From Auanema rhodensis (taxonomy: Eukaryota > Animalia > Nematoda), in NCBI GenBank assembly GCA_964057225.1, contig OZ059897.1, positions 3,782,001 to 3,846,000 of the forward strand: 64,000 bases of DNA, written 5' to 3'. Shown piece after piece: positions 21,000 to 49,929 of this stretch (position 1 is the stretch's first letter; each line of letters begins with the position of its first letter). Made by a program: the position numbers and the translations under genes. Under the pieces are notes generated by a model, which worked only from the letters and a program-made list of their open reading frames with translations, was not told the origin of the DNA and made no database searches.

Positions 21000-23900
21000 A
21001 TTTTTAAGCTGCGTCGATCTGTGTTATCAGATTTGCGCTAGCTTAAAAATGCTCCGAGATATCAACTTATATAAGTTCACACTTATATCCTCGATTTTCA
21101 CCCTGAAGAATTAATTTTTTCGTTGAATAACATTGTCCATTGTCTTTGCCTTGAAAAAAGAAATCTAAAAACTCCTACTTTTTGTGAAATTATTTAGAAA
21201 TTTTTCGGGAAAATTTTTGTCACAATGTTTTTGGAAGCAATGTTGAGTGTACATGGGAACTCAACATACACTAATGCATTATTTTTCAAACGATCATAAC
21301 TAATTTTTGTATAGAGCGTTTCCTAATGTAGTATAGTGCATTCGATGCGGATTTTTAAGCTGCGTTGATCTGTGTTATCAGATTTGAGTTAGCTTAAAAA
21401 TGCACCGAGATATCAACTGATATATGTTCACACTTATATCCTCGATTTTCACCCTGAAGAATTAATTTTTTCGTTGAATAACATTGTCCATCGTCTTTGC
21501 CTTGAAAAAAGAAATCTAAAAACATCTACTTTTTGTGAAATTATTTAGAAATTTTTCGGGAAAATTTTTGTCACAATGTTTTTGGAAGCAATGTTGAGTG
21601 TACATGGGAACTCAACATACACTAATGCATTATTTTTCAAACGATCATAACTAATTCTTGTATAGAGCGTTTCTCAATGTAGTATAGTGCATTCGATGCG
21701 GATTTTTAAGCTGCGTTGATCTGTGATATCAGATTTGAGTTAACTTAAAAATGCACCGAGATATCAACTGATATATGTTCTCACTTATATCCTCGATTTT
21801 CACCCTGAAGAAATGATTTTTTCGTTGAATAACATTGTCCATCGTCTTTGCCTTGAAAAAAGAAATCTAAAAACATCTACTTTTTGTGAAATTATTTAGA
21901 AATTTTTCGGGAAAATTTTTGTCACAATGTTTTTGGAAGCAATGTTAAGTGTACATGGGAACTCAACACACACTAATGCATTATTTTTCAAACGATCATA
22001 ACTAATTTTTGTATAGAGCGTTTCTTAATGTAGTATAGTGCAGTCGATGCGGATTTTTAAGCTGCGTCGATCTGTGTTATCAGATTTGCGCTAGCTTAAA
22101 AATGCTCCGAGATATCAACTTATATAAGTTCACACTTATATTCTCGATTTTCACCCTGAAGAATTAATTTTTTCGTTGAATAACATTGTCGATCGTCTTT
22201 GCCTTGAAAAAAGGAATCTAAAAACATTTACTTTTTGTGAAATTATTCAGAAATTTTTCGGGAAAATTTTTGTCAAAATGTTTTTGGAAGCAATGTTGAG
22301 TGTACATGGGAACTCAACATACACTAATGCATTATTTTTCAAACGATCATAACTAATTTTTGTATAGAGCGTTTCTCAATGTAGTATAGTGCATTCGATG
22401 CGGATTTTTAAGCTGCGTCGATCTGTGTTATCAGATTTGAGTTAGCTTAAAAATGCACCGAGATATCAACTGATATAGGTTCACACTTATATCCTCGATT
22501 TTCACCCTGAAGAAATGATTTTTTCGTTGAATAACATTGTCCATCGTCTTTGCCTTGAAAAAAGAAATCTGAAAACATTTACTTTTCGTGAAATTATTCA
22601 GAAATTTTTCGGGAAAATTTTTGTCAAAATGTTTTTGGAAGCAATGTTGAGTGTACATGGGAACTCAACACACACTAATGCATTATTTTTCAAACGATCA
22701 TAACTAATTTTTGTATTAAGCTTTTCTCAATGTAGTATAGTGCAGTCGATGCGGATTTTTAAGCTGCGTCGATCTGTGTTATCAGATTTGCGCTAGCTTA
22801 AAAATGCTCCGAGATATCAACTTATATAAGTTCACACTTATATCCTCGATTTTCACCCTGAAGAATTAAATTTTTCGTTGAATAACATTGTCGATCGTCT
22901 TTGCCTTGAAAAAAGGAATCTAAAAACATTTACTTTTTGTGAAATTATTCAGAAATTTTTCGGGAAAATTTTTGTCAAAATGTTTTTGGAAGCAATGTTG
23001 AGTGTACATGGGAACTCAACATACACTAATGCATTATTTTTCAAACGATCATAACTAATTTTTGTATGGAGCGTTTCTCAATGTAGTATAGTGCATTCGA
23101 TGCGGATTTTTAAGCTGCGTTGATCTGTGTTATCAGATTTGAGTTAGCTTAAAAATGCACCGAGATATCAACTGATATATGTTCACACTTATATCCTCGA
23201 TTTTCACCCTGAAGAATTAATTTTTTCGTTGAATAACTTTGTCCATCGTCTTTGCCTTGAAAAAAAGAATCTAAAAACATTTACTTTTTGTGAAATTATT
23301 CAGAAATTTTTCGGGAAAATTTTTGTCAAAATGTTTTTGGAAGCAATGTTGAGTGTACATGGGAACTCAACATACACTAATGCATTATTTTTCAAACGAT
23401 CATAACTAATTTTTGTATAGAGCGTCTCTCATTGTAATATAGTGCATTCGATGCGGATTTTTAAGCTGCGTCGATCTGTGTTATCAGATTTGCGCTAGCT
23501 TAAAAATGCTCCGAGATATCAACTTATATAAGTTCACACTTATATCCTCGATTTTCACCCTGAAGAATTAATTTTTTCGTTGAATAACATTGTCCATCGT
23601 CTTTGCCTTGAAAAAAGAAATCGAAAAACTCCTACTTTTTGTGAAATTATTTAGAAATTTTTCGGGAAAATTTTTGTCACAATGTTTTTGGAAGCAATGT
23701 TGAGTGTACATGGGAACTCAACATACACTAATGCATTATTTTTCAAACGATCATAACTAATTTTTGTATAGAGCGTTTCTCAATGTAGTATAGTGCATTC
23801 GATGCGGATTTTTAAGCTGCGTCGATCTGTGTTATCAGATTTGAGTTAGCTTAAAAATGCACCGAGATATCAACTGATATAGGTTCACACTTATATCCTC

Positions 23901-24900
23901 GATTTTCACCCTGAAGAAATGATTTTTTCGTTGAATAACATTGTCCATCGTCTTCGTCTTGAAAAAAAAAATCTAAAAACATCTACTTTTTGTGAAATTA
24001 TTCAGAAATTTTTCGGGAAAATTTTTGTCAAAATGTTTTTGGAAGCAATGTTGAGTGTACATGGGAACTCAACATACACTAATGCATTATTTTTCAAACG
24101 ATCATAACTAATTTTTGTATAGAGCGTTTTTCAATGTAGTATAGTGCATTCGATGCGGATTTTTAAGCTGCGTTGATCTGTGTTATCAGATTTGCGTTAA
24201 CTTAAGAATGCACCGAGATATCAACTGATATATGTTCACACTTATATCCTCGATTTTCACCCTGAAGAAATGATTTTTTCGTTGAATAACATTGTCCATC
24301 GTCTTTGCCTTGAAAAAAGAAATCTAAAAACTACTACTTTTTGTGAAATTATTTAGAAATTTTTCGGGAAAATTTTTGTCAAAATGTTTTTGGAAGCAAT
24401 GTTGAGTGTACATGGGAACTCAACATACACTAATGCATTATTTTTCAAACGATCATAACTAATTTTTGTATAGAGCGTCTCTCATTGTAATATAGTGCAT
24501 TCGATGCGGATTTTTAAGCTGCGTCGATCTGTGTTATCAGATTTGCGCTAGCTTAAAAATGCTCCGAGATATCAACTTATATAAGTTCACACTTATATCC
24601 TCGATTTTCACCCTGAAGAATTAATTTTTTCGTTGAATAACATTGTCCATCGTCTTTGCCTTGAAAAAAGAAATTTAAAAACTCCTACTTTTTGTGAAAT
24701 TATTTAGAAATTTTTCGGGAAAATTTTTGTCACAATGTTTTTGGAAGCAATGTTGAGTGTACATGGGAACTCAACATACACTAATGCATTATTTTTCAAA
24801 CGATCATAACTAATTTTTGTATAGAGCGTTTCTTAATGTATTATAGTGCATTCGATGCGGATTTTTAAGCTGCGTTGATCTGTGTTATCAGATTTGAGTT
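21000..24900. repeat. Heterogeneous satellite segment with mixed A/B-type variants
   Basis: Many local variants (GCTCCGAG, AACTTATATAAGTT, GCAGTCGA, GTCGATCG, CAACACAC) plus B-type alleles (GCGTCGAT, ATAAGTTC, ATTAAGC, AATAACTTT); no regular period above 351. Confidence 0.75.
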
Positions 24901-31300: not shown

Positions 31301-32914
31301 AACATGTCCATCGTATTTGTCTTGAAAAAAGGAATCTAAAAACATCTACTTTTTGTGAAATTATTTAGAAATTTTTCGGGAAAATTTTTGTCAAAATGTT
31401 TTTGGAAGCAATGTTGAGTGTACATGGGAACTCAACATACACTAATGTATTATTTTTCAAACGATCATAACTAATTTTTGTATAGAGCGTTTCTCATTGT
31501 AGTATAGTGCATTCGATGCGGATTTTTAAGCTGCGTTGATCTGTGTTATCAGATTTGAGTTATCTTAAAAATACACCGAGATATCAACTGATATATGTTC
31601 ACACTTATATCCTCGATTTTCACCCTGAAGAAATGATTTTTTCGTTGAATAACATTGTCCATCGTCTTCGTCTTGAAAAAAAAAATCTAAAACATCTACT
31701 TTTTGTGAAAATATTCAGAAATTTTTCGGGAAAATTTTTGTCAAAATGTTTTTGGAAGCAATGTTGAGTGTACATGGGAACTCAACATACACTAATGCAT
31801 TATTTTTCAAACGATCATAACTAATTTTTGTATAGAGCGTTTCTCAATGTAGTATAGTGCATTCGATGCGGATTCTTAAGCTGCGTTGATCTGTGTTATC
31901 AGATTTGAGTTAACTTAAAAATGCACCGAGATATCAACTGATATATGTTCACACTTATATCCTCGATTTTCACCCTGAAGAAATGATTTTTTCGTTGAAA
32001 AACATTGTCCATCGTATTCGTCTTGAAAAAAGGAATCTAAAAACATCTACTTTTTGTGAAATTATCTAGAAATTTTTCGGGAAAATTTTTGTCAAAATGT
32101 TTTTGGAAGCAATGTTGAGTGTACATGGGAACTCAACATACACTAATGCATTATTTTTCAAACGATCATAACTAATTTTTGTATAGAGCGTTTCTCATTG
32201 TAGTATAGTGCATTCGATGCGGATTTTTAAGCTGCGTTGATCTGTGTTATCAGATTTGAGTTAACTTAAAAATGCACCGAGATATCAACTGATATAGGTT
32301 CACACTTGTATCCTCGATTTTCACCCTGAAGAAATGATTTTTTCGTTGGAAAACATTGTCCATCGTATTCGTCTTGAAAAAAGGAATCTAAAAACATTTA
32401 CTTTTTGCGAAATTATTTAGAAATTTTTCGGGAAAATTTTTGTCAAAATGTTTTTGGAAGCAATGTTGAGTGTACATGGAAACTCAACATACACTAATGC
32501 ATCTTTTTTCAAACGATCATAACTAATTTTTGTATTAAGCGTTTCTCAATGTTGTATAGTGCATTCGATGCGGATTTTTAAGCTGCGTCGATCTGTGTTA
32601 TCAGATTTGCGCTAGCTTAAAAATGCACCGAGATATCAACTGATATAAGTTCACACTTATATCCTCGATTTTCACCCTGCAGAATTAATTTTTTCGTTGA
32701 ATAACTTTGTCCATCGTCTTTGCCTTGAAAAAAGGAATCTAAAAACATCTACTTTTTGCAAAATTATTTTGAAATTTTTCGGAAAAATTTTTGTCAAAAT
32801 GTTTTTGGAAGCAATGTTGAGTGTACATGGAAACTCAACATACACTAATGCATCATTTTTCAAACGATCATAACTAATTTTTGTATTAAGCGTTTCTCAC
32901 TGTTGTATAGTGCG

Positions 32915-32968
32915 AAATCGAGGATATAAGTGTGAACTGATATAAGTTCACACTTATATCCTCGATTT
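32915..32968. repeat. Perfect inverted repeat (24-bp arms, 6-nt spacer) in 297-bp monomer variant, copy 1
   Basis: AAATCGAGGATATAAGTGTGAACT-GATATA-AGTTCACACTTATATCCTCGATTT; the arms are exact reverse complements; local period is 297 (ORFs 32672->32969). Confidence 0.97.
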
Positions 32969-33562
32969 TCACCCTGCAGAATTAATTTTTTCGTTGAATA
33001 ACTTTGTCCATCGTCTTTGCCTTGAAAAAAGGAATCTAAAAACATCTCCTTTTTGCGAAATTATTTTGAAATTTTTTGGAAAAATTTTTGTAAAAATGTT
33101 TTTGGAAGCAATGTTGAGTGTACATGGAAACTCAACATACACTAATGCATCTTTTTTCAAACGATCTTAACTAATTTTTGTATTAAGCGTTTCTCAATGT
33201 TGTATAGTGCATTCGATGCGGATTTTTAAGCTGCGTCGATCTTTGTTATCAGATTTGCGCTAGCTTAAAAATGCACCGAGATATCAACTGATATAAGTTC
33301 ACACTTACATCCTCGATTTTCACCCTGGAGAATTAATTTTTTCGTTGAATAACATTGTCCATCGTCTTTGCCTTGAAAAAAGGAATCTAAAAACATCTAC
33401 TTTTTGCAAAATTATTTTGAAATTTTTCGGAAAAATTTTTGTCAAAATGTTTTTGGAAGCAATGTTGAGTGTACATGGAAACTCAACATACACTAATGCA
33501 TCATTTTTCAAACGATCATAACTAATTTTTGTATTAAGCGTTTCTCACTGTTGTATAGTGCG

Positions 33563-33616
33563 AAATCGAGGATATAAGTGTGAACTGATATAAGTTCACA
33601 CTTATATCCTCGATTT
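33563..33616. repeat. Perfect 24-bp-arm inverted repeat, copy 2
   Basis: Identical sequence, +648 (351+297) from copy 1. Confidence 0.97.
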
Positions 33617-36600
33617 TCACCCTGCAGAATTAATTTTTTCGTTGAATAACTTTGTCCATCGTCTTTGCCTTGAAAAAAGGAATCTAAAAACATCTCCTTT
33701 TTGCGAAATTATTTTGAAATTTTTTGGAAAAATTTTTGTAAAAATGTTTTTGGAAGCAATGTTGAGTGTACATGGAAACTCAACATACACTAATGCATCT
33801 TTTTTCAAACGATCTTAACTAATTTTTGTATTAAGCGTTTCTCACTGTTGTATAGTGCATTCGATGCGGATTTTTAAGCTGCGTCGATCTGTGTTATCAG
33901 ATTTGCGCTAGCTTAAAAATGCACCGAGATATCAACTGATATAAGTTCACACTTATATCCTCGATTTTCACCCTGCAGAATTAATTTTTTCGTTGAATAA
34001 CTTTGTCCATCGTCTTTGCCTTGAAAAAAGGAATCTAAAAACATCTCCTTTTTGCGAAATTATTTTGAAATTTTTCGGAAAAATTTTTGTCAAAATGTTT
34101 TTGGAAGCAATGTTGAGTATACATGGAAACTCAACATACACTAATGCATCTTTTTTCAAACGATCATAACTAATTTTTGTATATAGCGTTTCTCAATGTA
34201 GTAAAGTGCATTCGATGCGGATTTTTAAGCTGCGTTGATCTGTGTTATCAGATTTGAGTTAACTTAAAAATACACCGAGATATCAACTGATATATGTTCA
34301 CACTTATATCCTCGATTTTCACCCTGAAGAAATGATTTTTTCGTTGAATAACATTGTCCATCGTCTTCGTCTTGAAAAAAAAAATCTAAAACATCTACTT
34401 TTTGTGAAAATATTCAGAAATTTTTCGGGAAAATTTTTGTCAAAATGTTTTTGGAAGCAATGTTGAGTGTACATGGGAACTCAACATACACTAATGCATT
34501 ATTTTTCAAACGATCATAACTAATTTTTGTATAGAGCGTTTCTCATTGTAGTATAGTGCATTCGATGCGGATTTTTAAGCTGCGTTGATCTGTGTTATCA
34601 GATTTGCGCTAGCTTAAAAATGCACCGAGTAATCAACTGATATAGGTTCACACTTGTATCCTCGATTTTCACCCTGAAGAAATGATTTTTTCGTTGGAAA
34701 ACATTGTCCATCGTATTCGTCTTGAAAAAAGGAATCTAAAAACATCTACTTTTTGTGAAATTATTTAGAAATTTTTCGGGAAAATTTTTGTCAAAATGTT
34801 TTTGGAAGCAATGTTGAGTGTACATGGGAACTCAACATACACTAATGCATTATTTTTCAAACGATCATAACTAATTTTTGTATATAGCGTTTCTCAATGT
34901 AGTAAAGTGCATTCGATGCGGATTTTTAAGCTGCGTTGATCTGTGTTATCAGATTTGAGTTAACTTAAAAATGCACCGAGATATCAACTGATATAGGTTC
35001 ACACTTATATCCTCGATTTTCACCCTGAAGAAATGATTTTTTCGTTGAAAAACATGTCCATCGTATTTGTCTTGAAAAAAGGAATCTAAAAACATCTACT
35101 TTTTGTGAAATTATTTAGAAATTTTTCGGGAAAATTTTTGTCAAAATGTTTTTGGAAGCAATGTTGAGTGTACATGGGAACTCAACATACACTAATGTAT
35201 TATTTTTCAAACGATCATAACTAATTTTTGTATGGAGCGTTTCTCAATGTAGTATAGTGCATTCGATGCGGATTTTTAAGCTGCGTTGATCTGTGTTATC
35301 AGATTTGCGCTAGCTTAAAAATGCACCGAGTAATCAACTGATATAGGTTCACACTTATATCCTCGATTTTCACCCTGAAGAATTAATTTTTTCGTTGAAT
35401 AACATTGTCCATCGTCTTTGCCTTAAAAAAAGAAATCTAAAAACTCCTACTTTTTGTGAAATTATTTAGAAATTTTTCGGGAAAATTTTTGTCACAATGT
35501 TTTTGGAAGCAATGTTGAGTGTACATGGGAACTCAACATACACTAATGTATTATTTTTCAAACGATCATAACTAATTTTTGTATAGAGCGTTTCTCATTG
35601 TAGTATAGTGCATTCGATGCGGATTTTTAAGCTGCGTTGATCTGTGTTATCAGATTTGAGTTATCTTAAAAATACACCGAGATATCAACTGATATATGTT
35701 CACACTTATATCCTCGATTTTCACCCTGAAGAAATGATTTTTTCGTTGAATAACATTGTCCATCGTCTTCGTCTTGAAAAAAAAAATCTAAAACATCTAC
35801 TTTTTGTGAAAATATTCAGAAATTTTTCGGGAAAATTTTTGTCAAAATGTTTTTGGAAGCAATGTTGAGTGTACATGGGAACTCAACATACACTAATGCA
35901 TTATTTTTCAAACGATCATAACTAATTTTTGTATAGAGCGTTTCTCAATGTAGTATAGTGCATTCGATGCGGATTCTTAAGCTGCGTTGATCTGTGTTAT
36001 CAGATTTGAGTTAACTTAAAAATGCACCGAGATATCAACTGATATATGTTCACACTTATATCCTCGATTTTCACCCTGAAGAAATGATTTTTTCGTTGAA
36101 AAACATTGTCCATCGTATTCGTCTTGAAAAAAGGAATCTAAAAACATCTACTTTTTGTGAAAATATCTAGAAATTTTTCGGGAAAATTTTTGTCAAAATG
36201 TTTTTGGAAGCAATGTTGAGTGTACATGGGAACTCAACATACACTAATGCATTATTTTTCAAACGATCATAACTAATTTTTGTATAGAGCGTTTCTCATT
36301 GTAGTATAGTGCATTCGATGCGGATTTTTAAGCTGCGTTGATCTGTGTTATCAGATTTGAGTTAACTTAAAAATGCACCGAGATATCAACTGATATAGGT
36401 TCACACTTGTATCCTCGATTTTCACCCTGAAGAAATGATTTTTTCGTTGGAAAACATTGTCCATCGTATTCGTCTTGAAAAAAGGAATCTAAAAACATTT
36501 ACTTTTTGCGAAATTATTTAGAAATTTTTCGGGAAAATTTTTGTCAAAATGTTTTTGGAAGCAATGTTGAGTGTACATGGAAACTCAACATACACTAATG

Positions 36601-37015
36601 CATCTTTTTTCAAACGATCATAACTAATTTTTGTATTAAGCGTTTCTCAATGTTGTATAGTGCATTCGATGCGGATTTTTAAGCTGCGTCGATCTGTGTT
36701 ATCAGATTTGCGCTAGCTTAAAAATGCACCGAGATATCAACTGATATAAGTTCACACTTATATCCTCGATTTTCACCCTGCAGAATTAATTTGTTCGTTG
36801 AATAACTTTGTCCATCGTCTTTGCCTTGAAAAAAGGAATCTAAAAACATCTACTTTTTGCAAAATTATTTTGAAATTTTTCGGAAAAATTTTTGTCAAAA
36901 TGTTTTTGGAAGCAATGTTGAGTGTACATGGAAACTCAACATACACTAATGCATCATTTTTCAAACGATCATAACTAATTTTTGTATTAAGCGTTTCTCA
37001 CTGTTGTATAGTGCG

Positions 37016-37069
37016 AAATCGAGGATATAAGTGTGAACTGATATAAGTTCACACTTATATCCTCGATTT
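37016..37069. repeat. Perfect 24-bp-arm inverted repeat, copy 3
   Basis: Identical sequence, +4101 from copy 1. Confidence 0.97.
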
Positions 37070-37663
37070 TCACCCTGCAGAATTAATTTTTTCGTTGAAT
37101 AACTTTGTCCATCGTCTTTGCCTTGAAAAAAGGAATCTAAAAACATCTCCTTTTTGCGAAATTATTTTGAAATTTTTTGGAAAAATTTTTGTAAAAATGT
37201 TTTTGGAAGCAATGTTGAGTGTACATGGAAACTCAACATACACTAATGCATCTTTTTTCAAACGATCTTAACTAATTTTTGTATTAAGCGTTTCTCAATG
37301 TTGTATAGTGCATTCGATGCGGATTTTTAAGCTGCGTCGATCTTTGTTATCAGATTTGCGCTAGCTTAAAAATGCACCGAGATATCAACTGATATAAGTT
37401 CACACTTACATCCTCGATTTTCACCCTGGAGAATTAATTTTTTCGTTGAATAACATTGTCCATCGTCTTTGCCTTGAAAAAAGGAATCTAAAAACATCTA
37501 CTTTTTGCAAAATTATTTTGAAATTTTTCGGAAAAATTTTTGTCAAAATGTTTTTGGAAGCAATGTTGAGTGTACATGGAAACTCAACATACACTAATGC
37601 ATCATTTTTCAAACGATCATAACTAATTTTTGTATTAAGCGTTTCTCACTGTTGTATAGTGCG

Positions 37664-37717
37664 AAATCGAGGATATAAGTGTGAACTGATATAAGTTCAC
37701 ACTTATATCCTCGATTT
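37664..37717. repeat. Perfect 24-bp-arm inverted repeat, copy 4
   Basis: Identical sequence, +648 from copy 3. Confidence 0.97.
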
Positions 37718-40700
37718 TCACCCTGCAGAATTAATTTTTTCGTTGAATAACTTTGTCCATCGTCTTTGCCTTGAAAAAAGGAATCTAAAAACATCTCCTT
37801 TTTGCGAAATTATTTTGAAATTTTTTGGAAAAATTTTTGTAAAAATGTTTTTGGAAGCAATGTTGAGTGTACATGGAAACTCAACATACACTAATGCATC
37901 TTTTTTCAAACGATCTTAACTAATTTTTGTATTAAGCGTTTCTCACTGTTGTATAGTGCATTCGATGCGGATTTTTAAGCTGCGTCGATCTGTGTTATCA
38001 GATTTGCGCTAGCTTAAAAATGCACCGAGATATCAACTGATATAAGTTCACACTTATATCCTCGATTTTCACCCTGCAGAATTAATTTTTTCGTTGAATA
38101 ACTTTGTCCATCGTCTTTGCCTTGAAAAAAGGAATCTAAAAACATCTCCTTTTTGCGAAATTATTTTGAAATTTTTCGGAAAAATTTTTGTCAAAATGTT
38201 TTTGGAAGCAATGTTGAGTATACATGGAAACTCAACATACACTAATGCATCTTTTTTCAAACGATCATAACTAATTTTTGTATTAAGCGTTTTTCAATGT
38301 AGTATAGTGCATTCGATGCGGATTTTTAAGCTGCGTCGATCTGTGTTATCAGATTTGCGCTAGCTTAAAAATGCACCGAGATATCAACTGATATAAGTTC
38401 ACACTTATATCCTCGATTTTCACCCTGCAGAATTAATTTTTTCGTTGAATAACAATGTCCATCGTCTTTGCCTTGAAAAAAGGAATCTAAAAACATCTAC
38501 TTTTTGCGAAATTATTTTGAAATTTTTCGGAAAAATTTTTGTCAAAATGTTTTTGGAAGCAATGTTGAGTGTACATGGAAACTCAACATACACTAATGCA
38601 TCATTTTTCAAACGATCATAACTAATTTTTGTATTAAGCGTTTCTCAATGTTGTATAGTGCATTCGATGCGGATTTTTAAGCTGCGTCGATCTGTGTTAT
38701 CAGATTTGCGCTAGCTTAAAAATGCACCGAGATATCAACTGATATAAGTTTACACTTATATCCTCGATTTTCACCCTGCAGAATTAATTTTTTCGTTGAA
38801 TAACATTGTCCATCGTCTTTGCCTTGAAAAAAGGAATCTAAAAACATTTACTTTTTGCGAAATTATTTTGAAATTTTTTGGAAAAATTTTTGTCAAAATG
38901 TTTTTGGAAGCAATGTTGAGTATACATGGAAACTCAACATACACTAATGCATCTTTTTTCAAACGATCATAACTAATTTTTGTATTGAGCGTTTCTCAAT
39001 GTTGTATAGTGCATTCGATGCGGATTTTTAAGCTGCGTCGATCTGTGTTATCAGATTTGCGCTAGCTTAAAAATGCACCGAGATATCAACTGATATAAGT
39101 TTACACTTATATCCTCGATTTTCACCCTGCAGAATTAATTTTTTCGTTGAATAACATTGTCCATCGTCTTTGCCTTGAGAAAAGGAATCTAAAAACAACT
39201 ATTTTTTTGCTAAAATATTCTGAAATTTTTCGAAAAAATTTTTGTCAAAATGTTTTTGGAAGCAATGTTGAGTGTACATGGAAACTCAACATACACTAAT
39301 GCATCATTTTTCAAACGATCATAACTAATTTTTGTATTAAGCGTTTCTCAATGTAGTATTATGCATTCGATGCGGATTTTTAAGCTGCGTCGATCTGTGT
39401 TATCAGATTTGCGCTAGCTTAAAAATGCACCGAGATATCAACTGATATAAGTTCACACTTATATCCTCGATTTTCACCCTGCAGAATTAATTTTTTCGTT
39501 GAATAACTTTGTCCATCGTCTTTGCCTTGAAAAAAGGAATCTAAAAACATTTACTTTTTGGGAAATTATTTTGAAATTTTTCGGAAAAATTTTTGTCAAA
39601 ATGTTTTTGAAAGCAATGTTGAGTGTACATGGAAACTCAACATACACTAATGCATCATTTTTCAAACGATCATAACTAATTTTTGTATTAAGCGTTTCTC
39701 AATGTTGTATAATGCATTCGATGCGGATTTTTAAGCTGCGTCGATCTGTGTTATCAGATTTGCGCTAGCTAAAAATGCACCGAGATATCAACTGATATAA
39801 GTTCACACTTATATCCTCGATTTTCACCCTGGAGAATTAATTTTTTCGTTGAATAACATTGTCCATCGTCTTTGCCTTGAAAAAAGGAATCTAAAAACAT
39901 CTACTTTTTGCGAAATTATTTTGAAATTTTTCGGAAAAATTTTTGTCAAAATGTTTTTGGAAGCAATGTTGAGTATACATGGAAACTCAACATACACTAA
40001 TGCATCTTTTTTCAAACGATCATAACTAATTTTTGTATTAAGCGTTTTTCAATGTAGTATAGTGCATTCGATGCGGATTTTTAAGCTGCGTCGATCTGTG
40101 TTATCAGATTTGCGCTAGCTTAAAAATGCACCGAGATATCAACTGATATAAGTTCACACTTATATCCTCGATTTTCACCCTGCAGAATTAATTTTTTCGT
40201 TGAATAACTTTGTCCATCGTCTTTGCCTTGAAAAAAGGAATCTAAAAACATCTACTTTTTGGGAAATTATTTTGAAACTTTTCGGAAAAATTTTTGTCAA
40301 AATGTTTTTGAAAGCAATGTTGAGTGTACATGGAAACTCAACATACACTAATGCATCATTTTTCAAACGATCATAACTAATTTTTGTATTAAGCGTTTCT
40401 CAATGTTGTATAGTGCATTCGATGCGGATTTTTAAGCTGCGTCGATCTGTGTTATCAGATTTGCGCTACCTTAAAAATGCACCGAGATATCAACTGATAT
40501 AAGTTCACACTTATATCCTCGATTTTCACCCTGCAGAATTAATTTTTTCGTTGAATAACAATGTCCATTGTCTTTGCCTTGAAAAAAGGAATCTAAAAAC
40601 ATCTACTTTTTGCGAAATTGTTTCGAAATTTTCCGGAAAAATTTTTGTAAAAATGTTTTTGGAAGCAATGTTGAGTGTACATGGAAACTCAACATACACT

Positions 40701-41470
40701 AATGCATCATTTTTCAAACGATCATAACTAATTTTTGTATTTAGCGTTTCTCAATGTTGTATAGTGCATTCGATGCGGATTTTTAAGCTGCGTCGATCTG
40801 TGTTATCAGATTTGCGCTAGCTTAAAAATGCACCGAGATATCAACTGATATAAGTTCACACTTACATCCTCGATTTTCACCCTGGAGAATTAATTTTTTC
40901 GTTGAATAACATTGTCCATCGTCTTTGCCTTGAAAAAAGGAATCTAAAAACATCTACTTTTTGCAAAATTATTTTGAAATTTTTTGGAAAAATTTTTGTC
41001 AAAATGTTTTTGGAAGCAATGTTGAGTGTACATGGGAACTCAACATACACTAATGCATCATTTTTCAAACGATCATAACTAATTTTTGTATTAAGCGTTT
41101 CTCACTGTTGTATAGTGCATTCGATGCGGATTTTTAAGCTGCGTCGATCTGTGTTATCAGATTTGCGCTAGCTTAAAAATGCACCGAGATATCAACTGAT
41201 ATAAGTTCACACTTATATCCTCGATTTTCATTCTGCAGAATTAATTTTTTTGTTGAATAACATTGTGTATCGTCTTTGCCTTGAAAAACGGAATCTAAAA
41301 ACATTTACTTTTTGCGAAATTATTTTGAAATTTTTTGGAAAAATTTTTGTCAAAATGTTTTTGGAAGCAATGTTGAGTGTACATGGAAACTCAACATACA
41401 CTAATGCATCATTTTTCAAACGATCATAACTAATTTTTGTATTAAGCGTTTCTCACTGTTGTATAGTGCG

Positions 41471-41524
41471 AAATCGAGGATATAAGTGTGAACTGATATA
41501 AGTTCACACTTATATCCTCGATTT
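41471..41524. repeat. Perfect 24-bp-arm inverted repeat, copy 5
   Basis: Identical sequence; first unit of the 8-mer HOR. Confidence 0.97.
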
Positions 41525-44224
41525 TCACCCTGCAGAATTAATTTTTTCGTTGAATAACTTTGTCCATCGTCTTTGCCTTGAAAAAAGGAATCTAAAAACA
41601 TCTCCTTTTTGCGAAATTATTTTGAAATTTTTTGGAAAAATTTTTGTAAAAATGTTTTTGGAAGCAATGTTGAGTGTACATGGAAACTCAACATACACTA
41701 ATGCATCTTTTTTCAAACGATCTTAACTAATTTTTGTATTAAGCGTTTCTCAATGTTGTATAGTGCATTCGATGCGGATTTTTAAGCTGCGTCGATCTGT
41801 GTTATCAGATTTGCGCTAGCTTAAAAATGCACCGAGATATCAACTGATATAAGTTCACACTTATATCCTCGATTTTCACCCTGCAGAATTAATTTTTTTG
41901 TTGAATAACTTTGTCCATCGTCTTTGCCTTGAAAAAAGGAATCTAAAAACATCTCCTTTATGCGAAATTATTTTGAAATTTTTCGGAAAAATTTTTGTAA
42001 AAATGTTTTTGGAAGCAATGTTGAGTGTACATGGAAACTCAACATACACTAATGCATCATTTTTCAAACGATCATAACTAATTTTTGTATTAAGCGTTTC
42101 TCACTGTTGTATAGTGCATTCGATGCGGATTTTTAAGCTGCGTCGATCTGTGTTATCAGATTTGCGCTAGCTTAAAAATGCACCGAGATATCAACTGATA
42201 TAAGTTCACACTTACATCCTCGATTTTCACCCTGGAGAATTAATTTTTTCGTTGAATAACATTGTCCATCGTCTTTGCCTTGAAAAAAGGAATCTAAAAA
42301 CATCTACTTTTTGCAAAATTATTTTGAAATTTTTCGGAAAAATTTTTGTCAAAATGTTTTTGGAAGCAATGTTGAGTGTACATGGAAACTCAACATACAC
42401 TAATGCATCATTTTTCAAACGATCATAACTAATTTTTGTATTAAGCGTTTCTCACTGTTGTATAGTGCATTCGATGCGGATTTTTAAGCTGCGTCGATCT
42501 GTGTTATCAGATTTGCGCTAGCTTAAAAATGCACTGAGATATCAACTGATATAAGTTCACACTTATATCCTCGATTTTCATTCTGCAGAATTAATTTTTT
42601 TGTTGAATAACATTGTGTATCGTCTTTGCCTTGAAAAACGGAATCTAAAAACATTTACTTTTTGCGAAATTATTTTGAAATTTTTTGGAAAAATTTTTGT
42701 CAAAATGTTTTCGGAAGCAATGTTGAGTGTACATGGAAACTCAACATACACTAATGCATCTTTTTTCAAACGATCTTAACTAATTTTTGTATTAAGCGTT
42801 TCTCAATGTTGTATAGTGCATTCGATGCGGATTTTTAAGCTGCGTCGATCTGTGTTATCAGATTTGCGCTAGCTTAAAAATGCACCGAGATATCAACTGA
42901 TATAAGTTCACACTTATATCCTCGATTTTCACCCTGCAGAATTAATTTTTTCGTTGAATAACTTTGTCCATCGTCTTTGCCTTGAAAAAAGGAATCTAAA
43001 AACATCTCCTTTTTGCGAAATTATTTTGAAATTTTTCGGAAAAATTTTTGTAAAAATGTTTTTGGAAGCAATGTTGAGTGTACATGGAAACTCAACATAC
43101 ACTAATGCATCATTTTTCAAACGATCATAACTAATTTTTGTATTAAGCGTTTCTCAATGTTGTATAGTGCATTCGATGCGGATTTTTAAGCTGCGTCGAT
43201 CTGTGTTATCAGATTTGCGCTACCTTAAAAATGCACCGAGATATCAACTGATATAAGTTCACACTTATATCCTCGATTTTCACCCTGCAGAATTAATTTT
43301 TTCGTTGAATAACAATGTCCATCGTCTTTGCCTTGAAAAAAGGAATCTAAAAACATCTACTTTTTGCGAAATTGTTTCGAAATTTTCCGGAAAAATTTTT
43401 GTAAAAATGTTTTTGGAAGCAATGTTGAGTGTACATGGAAACTCAACATACACTAATGCATCATTTTTCAAACGATCATAACTAATTTTTGTATTAAGCG
43501 TTTCTCAATGTAGTATAGTGCATTCGATGCGGATTTTTAAGCTGCGTCGATCTGTGTTATCAGATTTGAGTTAGCTTGAAAATGCACCGAGATATCAACT
43601 GATATATGTTCACACTTATATCCTCGATTTTCACCCTGAAGAAATGATTTTTTCGTTGAAAAACATTGTCCATTGTATTCGTCTTGAAGAAAGGAATCTA
43701 AAAACATCTACTTTTTGCAAAATTATTTTGAAATTTTTCGGAAAAATTTTTGTCAAAATGTTTTTGGAAGCAATGTTGAGTGTACATGGGAACTCAACAT
43801 ACACTAATGCATCATTTTTCAAACGATCATAACTAATTTTTGTATTAAGCGTTTCTCACTGTTGTATAGTGCATTCGATGCGGATTTTTAAGCTGCGTCG
43901 ATCTGTGTTATCAGATTTGCGCTAGCTTAAAAATGCACCGAGATATCAACTGATATAAGTTCACACTTATATCCTCGATTTTCATTCTGCAGAATTAATT
44001 TTTTTGTTGAATAACATTGTGTATCGTCTTTGCCTTGAAAAACGGAATCTAAAAACATTTACTTTTTGCGAAATTATTTTGAAATTTTTTGGAAAAATTT
44101 TTGTCAAAATGTTTTTGGAAGCAATGTTGAGTGTACATGGAAACTCAACATACACTAATGCATCATTTTTCAAACGATCATAACTAATTTTTGTATTAAG
44201 CGTTTCTCACTGTTGTATAGTGCG

Positions 44225-44278
44225 AAATCGAGGATATAAGTGTGAACTGATATAAGTTCACACTTATATCCTCGATTT
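44225..44278. repeat. Perfect 24-bp-arm inverted repeat, copy 6
   Basis: Identical sequence, +2754 from copy 5. Confidence 0.97.
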
Positions 44279-46978
44279 TCACCCTGCAGAATTAATTTTT
44301 TCGTTGAATAACTTTGTCCATCGTCTTTGCCTTGAAAAAAGGAATCTAAAAACATCTCCTTTTTGCGAAATTATTTTGAAATTTTTTGGAAAAATTTTTG
44401 TAAAAATGTTTTTGGAAGCAATGTTGAGTGTACATGGAAACTCAACATACACTAATGCATCTTTTTTCAAACGATCTTAACTAATTTTTGTATTAAGCGT
44501 TTCTCAATGTTGTATAGTGCATTCGATGCGGATTTTTAAGCTGCGTCGATCTGTGTTATCAGATTTGCGCTAGCTTAAAAATGCACCGAGATATCAACTG
44601 ATATAAGTTCACACTTATATCCTCGATTTTCACCCTGCAGAATTAATTTTTTTGTTGAATAACTTTGTCCATCGTCTTTGCCTTGAAAAAAGGAATCTAA
44701 AAACATCTCCTTTATGCGAAATTATTTTGAAATTTTTCGGAAAAATTTTTGTAAAAATGTTTTTGGAAGCAATGTTGAGTGTACATGGAAACTCAACATA
44801 CACTAATGCATCATTTTTCAAACGATCATAACTAATTTTTGTATTAAGCGTTTCTCACTGTTGTATAGTGCATTCGATGCGGATTTTTAAGCTGCGTCGA
44901 TCTGTGTTATCAGATTTGCGCTAGCTTAAAAATGCACCGAGATATCAACTGATATAAGTTCACACTTACATCCTCGATTTTCACCCTGGAGAATTAATTT
45001 TTTCGTTGAATAACATTGTCCATCGTCTTTGCCTTGAAAAAAGGAATCTAAAAACATCTACTTTTTGCAAAATTATTTTGAAATTTTTCGGAAAAATTTT
45101 TGTCAAAATGTTTTTGGAAGCAATGTTGAGTGTACATGGAAACTCAACATACACTAATGCATCATTTTTCAAACGATCATAACTAATTTTTGTATTAAGC
45201 GTTTCTCACTGTTGTATAGTGCATTCGATGCGGATTTTTAAGCTGCGTCGATCTGTGTTATCAGATTTGCGCTAGCTTAAAAATGCACTGAGATATCAAC
45301 TGATATAAGTTCACACTTATATCCTCGATTTTCATTCTGCAGAATTAATTTTTTTGTTGAATAACATTGTGTATCGTCTTTGCCTTGAAAAACGGAATCT
45401 AAAAACATTTACTTTTTGCGAAATTATTATGAAATTTTTTGGAAAAATTTTTGTCAAAATGTTTTCGGAAGCAATGTTGAGTGTACATGGAAACTCAACA
45501 TACACTAATGCATCTTTTTTCAAACGATCTTAACTAATTTTTGTATTAAGCGTTTCTCAATGTTGTATAGTGCATTCGATGCGGATTTTTAAGCTGCGTC
45601 GATCTGTGTTATCAGATTTGCGCTAGCTTAAAAATGCACCGAGATATCAACTGATATAAGTTCACACTTATATCCTCGATTTTCACCCTGCAGAATTAAT
45701 TTTTTCGTTGAATAACTTTGTCCATCGTCTTTGCCTTGAAAAAAGGAATCTAAAAACATCTCCTTTTTGCGAAATTATTTTGAAATTTTTCGGAAAAATT
45801 TTTGTAAAAATGTTTTTGGAAGCAATGTTGAGTGTACATGGAAACTCAACATACACTAATGCATCATTTTTCAAACGATCATAACTAATTTTTGTATTAA
45901 GCGTTTCTCAATGTTGTATAGTGCATTCGATGCGGATTTTTAAGCTGCGTCGATCTGTGTTATCAGATTTGCGCTACCTTAAAAATGCACCGAGATATCA
46001 ACTGATATAAGTTCACACTTATATCCTCGATTTTCACCCTGCAGAATTAATTTTTTCGTTGAATAACAATGTCCATCGTCTTTGCCTTGAAAAAAGGAAT
46101 CTAAAAACATCTACTTTTTGCGAAATTGTTTCGAAATTTTCCGGAAAAATTTTTGTAAAAATGTTTTTGGAAGCAATGTTGAGTGTACATGGAAACTCAA
46201 CATACACTAATGCATCATTTTTCAAACGATCATAACTAATTTTTGTATTAAGCGTTTCTCAATGTAGTATAGTGCATTCGATGCGGATTTTTAAGCTGCG
46301 TCGATCTGTGTTATCAGATTTGAGTTAGCTTGAAAATGCACCGAGATATCAACTGATATATGTTCACACTTATATCCTCGATTTTCACCCTGAAGAAATG
46401 ATTTTTTCGTTGAAAAACATTGTCCATTGTATTCGTCTTGAAGAAAGGAATCTAAAAACATCTACTTTTTGCAAAATTATTTTGAAATTTTTCGGAAAAA
46501 TTTTTGTCAAAATGTTTTTGGAAGCAATGTTGAGTGTACATGGGAACTCAACATACACTAATGCATCATTTTTCAAACGATCATAACTAATTTTTGTATT
46601 AAGCGTTTCTCACTGTTGTATAGTGCATTCGATGCGGATTTTTAAGCTGCGTCGATCTGTGTTATCAGATTTGCGCTAGCTTAAAAATGCACCGAGATAT
46701 CAACTGATATAAGTTCACACTTATATCCTCGATTTTCATTCTGCAGAATTAATTTTTTTGTTGAATAACATTGTGTATCGTCTTTGCCTTGAAAAACGGA
46801 ATCTAAAAACATTTACTTTTTGCGAAATTATTTTGAAATTTTTTGGAAAAATTTTTGTCAAAATGTTTTTGGAAGCAATGTTGAGTGTACATGGAAACTC
46901 AACATACACTAATGCATCATTTTTCAAACGATCATAACAAATTTTTGTATTAAGCGTTTCTCACTGTTGTATAGTGCG

Positions 46979-47032
46979 AAATCGAGGATATAAGTGTGAA
47001 CTGATATAAGTTCACACTTATATCCTCGATTT
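46979..47032. repeat. Perfect 24-bp-arm inverted repeat, copy 7
   Basis: Identical sequence, +2754 from copy 6. Confidence 0.97.
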
Positions 47033-49929
47033 TCACCCTGCAGAATTAATTTTTTCGTTGAATAACTTTGTCCATCGTCTTTGCCTTGAAAAAAGGAATC
47101 TAAAAACATCTCCTTTTTGCGAAATTATTTTGAAATTTTTTGGAAAAATTTTTGTAAAAATGTTTTTGGAAGCAATGTTGAGTGTACATGGAAACTCAAC
47201 ATACACTAATGCATCTTTTTTCAAACGATCTTAACTAATTTTTGTATTAAGCGTTTCTCAATGTTGTATAGTGCATTCGATGCGGATTTTTAAGCTGCGT
47301 CGATCTGTGTTATCAGATTTGCGCTAGCTTAAAAATGCACCGAGATATCAACTGATATAAGTTCACACTTATATCCTCGATTTTCACCCTGCAGAATTAA
47401 TTTTTTTGTTCAATAACTTTGTCCATCGCCTTTGCCTTGAAAAAAGGAATCTAAAAACATCTCCTTTATGCGAAATTATTTTGAAATTTTTCGGAAAAAT
47501 TTTTGTAAAAATGTTTTTGGAAGCAATGTTGAGTGTACATGGAAACTCAACATACACTAATGCATCATTTTTCAAACGATCATAACTAATTTTTGTATTA
47601 AGCGTTTCTCACTGTTGTATAGTGCATTCGATGCGGATTTTTAAGCTGCGTCGATCTGTGTTATCAGATTTGCGCTAGCTTAAAAATGCACCGAGATATC
47701 AACTGATATAAGTTCACACTTACATCCTCGATTTTCACCCTGGAGAATTAATTTTTTCGTTGAATAACATTGTCCATCGTCTTTGCCTTGAAAAAAGGAA
47801 TCTAAAAACATCTACTTTTTGCAAAATTATTTTGAAATTTTTCGGAAAAATTTTTGTCAAAATGTTTTTGGAAGCAATGTTGAGTGTACATGGAAACTCA
47901 ACATACACTAATGCATCATTTTTCAAACGATCATAACTAATTTTTGTATTAAGCGTTTCTCACTGTTGTATAGTGCATTCGATGCGGATTTTTAAGCTGC
48001 GTCGATCTGTGTTATCAGATTTGCGCTAGCTTAAAAATGCACTGAGATATCAACTGATATAAGTTCACACTTATATCCTCGATTTTCATTCTGCAGAATT
48101 AATTTTTTTGTTGAATAACATTGTGTATCGTCTTTGCCTTGAAAAACGGAATCTAAAAACATTTACTTTTTGCGAAATTATTATGAAATTTTTTGGAAAA
48201 ATTTTTGTCAAAATGTTTTCGGAAGCAATGTTGAGTGTACATGGAAACTCAACATACACTAATGCATCTTTTTTCAAACGATCTTAACTAATTTTTGTAT
48301 TAAGCGTTTCTCAATGTTGTATAGTGCATTCGATGCGGATTTTTAAGCTGCGTCGATCTGTGTTATCAGATTTGCGCTAGCTTAAAAATGCACCGAGATA
48401 TCAACTGATATAAGTTCACACTTATATCCTCGATTTTCACCCTGCAGAATTAATTTTTTCGTTGAATAACTTTGTCCATCGTCTTTGCCTTGAAAAAAGG
48501 AATCTAAAAACATCTCCTTTTTGCGAAATTATTTTGAAATTTTTCGGAAAAATTTTTGTAAAAATGTTTTTGGAAGCAATGTTGAGTGTACATGGAAACT
48601 CAACATACACTAATGCATCATTTTTCAAACGATCATAACTAATTTTTGTATTAAGCGTTTCTCAATGTTGTATAGTGCATTCGATGCGGATTTTTAAGCT
48701 GCGTCGATCTGTGTTATCAGATTTGCGCTACCTTAAAAATGCACCGAGATATCAACTGATATAAGTTCACACTTATATCCTCGATTTTCACCCTGCAGAA
48801 TTAATTTTTTCGTTGAATAACAATGTCCATCGTCTTTGCCTTGAAAAAAGGAATCTAAAAACATCTACTTTTTGCGAAATTGTTTCGAAATTTTCCGGAA
48901 AAATTTTTGTAAAAATGTTTTTGGAAGCAATGTTGAGTGTACATGGAAACTCAACATACACTAATGCATCATTTTTCAAACGATCATAACTAATTTTTGT
49001 ATTAAGCGTTTCTCAATGTAGTATAGTGCATTCGATGCGGATTTTTAAGCTGCGTCGATCTGTGTTATCAGATTTGAGTTAGCTTGAAAATGCACCGAGA
49101 TATCAACTGATATATGTTCACACTTATATCCTCGATTTTCACCCTGAAGAAATGATTTTTTCGTTGAAAAACATTGTCCATTGTATTCGTCTCGAAGAAA
49201 GGAATCTAAAAACATCTACTTTTTGCAAAATTATTTTGAAATTTTTCGGAAAAATTTTTGTAAAAATGTTTTTGGAAGCAATGTTGAGTGTACATGGAAA
49301 CTCAACATACACTAATGCATCATTTTTCAAACGATCATAACTAATTTTTGTATTAAGCGTTTCTCAATGTTGTATAGTGCATTCGATGCGGATTTTTAAG
49401 CTGCGTCGATCTGTGTTATCAGATTTGCGCTACCTTAAAAATGCACCGAGATATCAACTGATATAAGTTCACACTTATATCCTCGATTTTCACCCTGCAG
49501 AATTAATTTTTTCGTTGAATAACAATGTCCATCGTCTTTGCCTTGAAAAAAGGAATCTAAAAACATCTACTTTTTGCGAAATTGTTTCGAAATTTTCCGG
49601 AAAAATTTTTGTAAAAATGTTTTTGGAAGCAATGTTGAGTGTACATGGAAACTCAACATACACTAATGCATCATTTTTCAAACGATCATAACTAATTTTT
49701 GTATTAAGCGTTTCTCAATGTAGTATAGTGCATTCGATGCGGATTTTTAAGCTGCGTCGATCTGTGTTATCAGATTTGAGTTAGCTTGAAAATGCACCGA
49801 GATATCAACTGATATATGTTCACACTTATATCCTCGATTTTCACCCTGAAGAAATGATTTTTTCGTTGAAAAACATTGTCCATTGTATTCGTCTTGAAGA
49901 AAGGAATCTAAAAACATCTACTTTTTGTG

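Follow-up and report, generated by a model that had tools for sequence, protein, structure and literature searches.

The 351-bp satellite of Auanema rhodensis contains a 297-bp monomer variant that carries a 54-bp nearly perfect palindrome, and we assign a probability of roughly 0.78 to its origin by one complex mutation that affected a single B-type monomer and was later passively copied. The variant and the swap that defines it are confirmed in the assembly sequence, and the fold-back geometry of the mutation is well supported. The event illustrates a known type of mutation in a clean natural case and involves no new mechanism or element. All coordinates refer to the window, i.e. the whole stretch of 64,000 nucleotides that was analysed. 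Features with a direction lie on the plus strand, whereas the spacer and the palindrome copies are given without a strand.

The 351-bp satellite forms one array that fills the window from 1 to 64000, as found with TRF, and it is AT-rich over this entire length. Segmentation with a conserved anchor motif, which was chosen in this analysis and fixes the monomer phase, gave 182 monomers: 161 of 351 bp, 13 of 350 bp, one of 352 bp and seven of 297 bp. When the monomers were clustered, A-type monomers were found on both flanks and B-type monomers from about 30.8 to 49.5 kb. The short form of 297 bp, here termed C, accounts for 3.8% of the monomers in the window. It was confined to the company of B monomers, and among the 182 clustered monomers none of this length was found in the A-type flanks. 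The monomer order was B C B C B, 7 A, B C B C B, 9 B and then three times C B B B B B A B. The FISH probes AT-1, XR-1, XT-1 and XT-2, which represent published Auanema rhodense repeats, were compared with the window with six mismatches allowed, and none of the four matched.

The junction 16-mer named in the original prediction was recovered seven times in the window, at positions 32908, 33556, 37009, 37657, 41464, 44218 and 46972. The seven 297-bp monomers are identical to each other over their whole length. In the first copy (32880-33176, with the phase taken from the anchor motif), 75 bp of the neighbouring B monomer (32563-32637) are replaced by 21 bp (32914-32934), which gives the net change of -54 bp that had been predicted. 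In the B monomer as well as in the variant, the swapped stretch is flanked by GTGC on the left and by AACT on the right. The bases GTGC (32910-32913) are the last four parental ones before the left breakpoint, and the basal stem GTGCATT of the deleted hairpin begins with them in the parent. They are followed by an odd G at position 32914, where the parental continuation and the reverse-complement donor both predict an A. The other 20 of the 21 new bases (32915-32934) match the reverse complement of 32949-32968 without exception, as had been claimed, and an in-register match of 20 nt is expected by chance with a probability of about 1e-12.

The new bases run into AACT (32935-32938) at the inner end of the left arm. 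This is a 4-bp overlap of the parent and the copied strand, and the switch point is ambiguous within it. The spacer GATATA (32939-32944) is the centre of a dyad found in every monomer of the array, and it is followed by the right arm (32945-32968), which is parental and the donor of the copy. The predicted perfect arms of 24 bp (32915-32938 and 32945-32968) around the 6-nt spacer were found exactly. The inverted-repeat search reported a 54-bp palindrome with 27-nt arms, no spacer, 96% complementarity and a single central mismatch, because the spacer itself is self-complementary at four of its six positions. Folded as single-stranded DNA, the palindrome gave -26 kcal/mol (z = -12.2), and none of 200 shuffled sequences was as stable. 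The further copies are located at 33563-33616, 37016-37069, 37664-37717, 41471-41524, 44225-44278 and 46979-47032, and the fifth of the seven (41471-41524) is in the first unit of a 2754-bp repeat of eight monomers. The adjacent arm, which had been named as the donor, also withstood a search of the window. Neither the 21-mer nor its complement had any other donor there, and the 20 outer bases of the arm, the source of the copy, are present in 144 monomers.

The 75-bp segment that is absent from the variant was then inspected in the neighbouring B monomer (32563-32637). It includes a perfect stem of 11 bp (32574-32584 paired to 32614-32624) and is bounded by the mutually pairing sequences GTGCATT and AATGCAC. 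In a sliding window of 80 nt it is the most stable DNA fold of the monomer, with -17.6 kcal/mol compared to -14.1 kcal/mol for the next best. Both its boundaries and its rank as the strongest hairpin are in agreement with the earlier claims. The left breakpoint lies 4 nt into the basal stem of this hairpin, and the new palindrome reached -26.7 kcal/mol in the same sliding 80-nt fold. In the large hairpin, AGT of the A monomers at the consensus positions 82-84 (e.g. 32610-32612) of the right arm is changed to CGC in the B monomers. These clustered changes add three G-C pairs opposite GCG and strengthen the hairpin that was later deleted in the variant.

The closest parent-like monomer of 351 bp (33825-34175) is identical to the variant in the flanks of the swap and shows four differences in the 3' half. 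Its twin at 37926-38276 has the same identical flanks and likewise differs from the variant at four sites on the 3' side. Since these two monomers have the exact flanks of the variant, a plausible parental allele is still present in the array. The presumed ancestral state is thus taken from parent-like alleles of the same array as the variant. The central dyad is found in all monomers (e.g. 32638-32651), and its eleventh base was scored as T 83 times, as G 55 times and as A 46 times. The AACT/AGTT seed had been attributed to the parental B allele. This was borne out, as the central site is an A in the B-type and a T or G in the A-type monomers, and the pairing is given by A alone. With its three high-frequency alleles, the eleventh base of the dyad may be a mutational hot spot.

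The geometry was tested by an enumeration in which the variant was composed of a parental left part, the reverse complement of any parental stretch and a parental right part, in all combinations. No exact solution with a single switch was found in this enumeration. When one mismatch was allowed, a single family of solutions was obtained, in which the parent is kept through GTGC, the complement of the parental positions 120/124-144 is copied and the parent is resumed at AACT. The family has five equivalent members that differ only within the 4-nt AACT overlap, and the sole mismatch is the G at 32914. The composition of the four-point template-switch model (left, reverse-complement copy and right) was therefore present with one mismatch, and the copy explains the clustered changes except for this G. 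No monomer in the window has a variant that would template a G at the parental continuation or at the donor site. Because the G at 32914 is templated by neither partner, the event was not a clean one-switch copy. Classical quasi-palindrome correction stays within the dyad and does not involve a loss of 75 bp outside of it. In the classical case both switches are inside the dyad and there is no large net deletion, whereas the return point of the variant is 75 bp away and 54 bp were lost in total.

Fold-back template switching, the central claim of the original prediction, was upheld in its geometry. A 3' end on a 4-bp overlap, a copy of 20 nt and rejoining past the 75-bp hairpin segment agree with the enumeration, the parental allele and the hairpin. 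The claim did not account for the 21st base, the G at 32914. An 8-mer spanning this G, TGCGAAAT (32911-32918), is found again in the same monomer 143 bp further downstream (33054-33061), and this downstream site is itself A/G polymorphic among the B monomers. The recurrence could be a coincidence, or it could point to a third templated step of short length. As evidence for a third patch it is weak, because the A allele of the downstream site fits the expected junction equally well.

We propose that a free 3' DNA end at the AACT/AGTT dyad would have folded back on itself, with 4 bp paired and a loop of 6 nt. A polymerase would then have used the strand's own flank as the template for 20 nt, and the last base added would have been wrong or untemplated. 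The 3' end would finally have been connected to the base of the monomer's strongest hairpin, at a distance of 75 bp. The predicted product is a deletion of 75 bp with a reverse-complement insert of 21 bp, by which the small existing dyad would be converted into the 54-bp near-perfect palindrome. Both the role of the hairpin as the cause of the stall or break and the identity of the enzymes are inferred. The product does not distinguish between the plus and the minus strand as the one that folded back, nor between a fork and a broken end, as the mirror-image pathway and break repair give the same sequence.

At somewhat less than even odds, the scar might stem from a break at the blocked hairpin that was closed by end joining of the polymerase-theta type, a route outside the original prediction. 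A purely replicative strand switch, as originally proposed, is a tentative possibility with the odds clearly against it. We lean slightly towards polymerase theta, which would be a strong candidate in a nematode, and the sequence does not separate the two. In C. elegans, polymerase theta generates deletions of 50-200 bp at replication blocks, with inserts copied from the flank (PMC4032859, PMC5068794). About a quarter of these deletions have flank-copied inserts, which average about 10 nt, and snap-back reverse complements are a minority of the inserts. The copying errors cluster where the extension aborts (PMC4032859, PMC5068794). Similar to the scars in C. elegans (PMC4032859, PMC5068794, PMC4490562), the 75-bp deletion falls into the 50-200 bp class. 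The donor 32949-32968 begins 10 nt from the right breakpoint and is copied as a reverse complement, as snap-back predicts, and the wrong base is the last one of the copied stretch. In contrast, the insert of 21 nt is longer than the average, its snap-back type is the minority class in C. elegans, and the product has a G where a junction homology of 1 nt was expected (both partners A/T).

Alternatively, two separate events could have occurred in either order, namely an extension of the quasi-palindrome by template switching and, separately, a slippage across the base of the hairpin that deleted this segment. In the parent, the left side already matches the complement of the right arm in scattered blocks, which makes a correction without a deletion conceivable. 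In addition, hairpins are known hot spots of deletion, and the odd G could be the remnant of a second junction. However, an intermediate was found in none of the 182 monomers, and the new left arm was observed only together with the deletion. The observed junction base is also not obtained when a simple deletion is assumed to follow on a corrected intermediate. One event is more parsimonious than two that end on the same nucleotide, and we consider the two-event origin unlikely.

After the single mutation, ordinary unequal exchange would have spread the variant to at least seven identical copies by at least three duplication steps. Three units of 2754 bp with eight monomers each were found at 41436-49697, which are about 99.9% identical, with about six substitutions between them in 5.5 kb. 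At 31346-38285, a block of 2.8 kb is repeated at an offset of 4101 bp, and the C-B pair is doubled inside the block. Equally recent runs of near-identical monomers were seen in the A-type flanks, for example the 14 monomers 17-30 at an offset of 21 monomers. The idea that the palindrome drives its own amplification was not supported, with equally recent multi-monomer duplications in the parts of the array that have no variant. Since comparably recent duplications are found all over the array, the palindrome shows no special tendency for amplification.

Nothing suggests a function of the palindrome. A functional or self-promoting role, be it as a protein-binding or cruciform site, a break motif for DNA elimination, a hairpin-RNA gene or a break hot spot driving amplification, is in our view highly improbable. 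The dyad centre is conserved in all monomers, the segregating substitutions are biased to keeping or improving hairpins, and the palindrome is perfect in all seven copies, which speaks in favour of such a role. Against it, the variant is rare relative to the whole satellite, and the equally recent duplications without the variant speak against self-promotion. The nematode elimination motif SFE is a degenerate palindrome of 29 bp with a conserved GGC-N3(4)-GCC centre (PMC13060919), and its GGC-N3-GCC core was found nowhere in the window. An RNA gene was rejected as well, since Rfam gave only sub-threshold matches to generic miRNA hairpins, the best with 34 bits compared to a gathering threshold of 90. 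A public run search returned no RNA runs with the sequence.

The same dyad centre was perfected a second time. Five monomers contain AACTTATATAAGTT, a perfect palindrome of 14 bp, at 21064-21077, 22117-22130, 22819-22832, 23521-23534 and 24574-24587. It corresponds to the B allele with one G-to-T change and represents an independent perfection of this dyad. The effect of substitutions on the local hairpins was evaluated across the array by a stratified comparison of 112 segregating substitutions with unobserved ones of the same base-change type, which assumes the polarity and the independence of the changes. The mean change was +0.14 kcal/mol for the segregating and +0.38 kcal/mol for the unobserved substitutions (p about 0.009). 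A third of the segregating substitutions were stabilising, compared to a fifth of the unobserved ones of the same type (p about 0.0008). This bias towards hairpin-stabilising or hairpin-neutral changes could result from hairpin-directed mutation or from selection on the dyads, and we regard it as a lead. It would be a bold extrapolation, and a very doubtful one, that hairpin-directed snap-back repair acts generally to build and lengthen palindromes in the germline satellites of this nematode, which is reported to discard satellites from its body cells. The conserved dyad centre, the second dyad-perfecting variant and the substitution bias are hints in this direction, none of which shows a function. 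If it were true, new palindromes could supply break or elimination motifs or bias the local amplification.

The satellite was also found in public data, in 13 runs from four studies. It is very abundant, including the B-type-specific stretches (32500-33300), in the contigs of four runs (X1, X6, X8 and X9), which have three organism labels and belong to three studies. The abundance under three organism labels indicates that the satellite family is shared beyond the source sample. The depth at the junction was measured on the assembled contigs of these four runs and summed per bin. In the bin 32905-32931, which holds the junction, the contig depth was 15,535, 292, 48 and 64 in the four runs, compared to 1e5 to 1e7 elsewhere. 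The contig depth of the junction bin was 200 to 17,000 times below that of the flanking bins, and among the contig pieces listed for the four runs none bridged it. In the best run the junction reached at most about 0.4% of the flanking contig depth, compared to the 3.8% of the window monomers. As the junction-bin depth is far below that of the flanks, the variant is rare in the satellite as a whole. In X1, the best holder, the depth ratio of the junction bin to the left bin exceeded that of the runs from organisms B and C by a factor of 35-70, a hint that fits real but rare and restricted junction contigs. Metagenome scans with the junction and with a conserved monomer stretch were both blank, and an ORF of 61 amino acids crossing the palindrome had no exact-protein record.

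An artefact of assembly or sequencing, such as a chimeric or mis-polished consensus propagated through the repetitive assembly, would agree with the contig-depth dip in the four runs, the blank metagenome scan and a junction known from the assembly sequence alone, but we consider it very improbable. The junction stands seven times in three repeat contexts with neighbouring monomers that differ by real substitutions. In missed-adapter fold-back chimeras, the whole read past the adapter site is mirrored, and an in-register patch of 20 nt would not be made. The higher depth ratio of X1 relative to organisms B and C is suggestive of a real junction.

A stretch of 130 bp includes the parental allele, the donor, the overlap and also the hairpin that was deleted, which makes the variant an unusually legible natural footprint of a single complex mutation. 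Its product is preserved in seven identical copies and can serve as a worked example for the one-step origin of a long perfect palindrome in satellite DNA. The difference between 297 and 351 bp is a variant-specific marker for the turnover of the array between strains. Conserved short dyads predicted to form non-B DNA are also known from the monomers of other satellites (PMC5889037). These are shorter than 10 bp and family-wide, whereas the palindrome described here has arms of 24-27 bp and belongs to one rare variant, and no centromere role is known for the 351-bp satellite. In yeast, inverted repeats expand by template switching, and imperfect arms are homogenised and lengthened by arm-to-arm copying (PMC8604942, PMC13100816), as in the variant. 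The yeast cases are in genes and promoters and show neither a large deletion nor a tandem amplification. Short-range template-switch mutations, described by the quasi-palindrome model of Ripley and by four-switch-point models (PMC8794818, PMC7954356), share with the variant the clustered changes that are a reverse-complement copy from a few bases away. Template switching can make perfect stems in one event (PMC8794818), and the variant likewise shows a perfect stem made in one step with a switch at a short overlap. It differs from these mutations in that the return switch is 75 bp away and the hairpin-bearing segment was deleted, that one base is untemplated, and that the event took place in a satellite monomer whose product was amplified.
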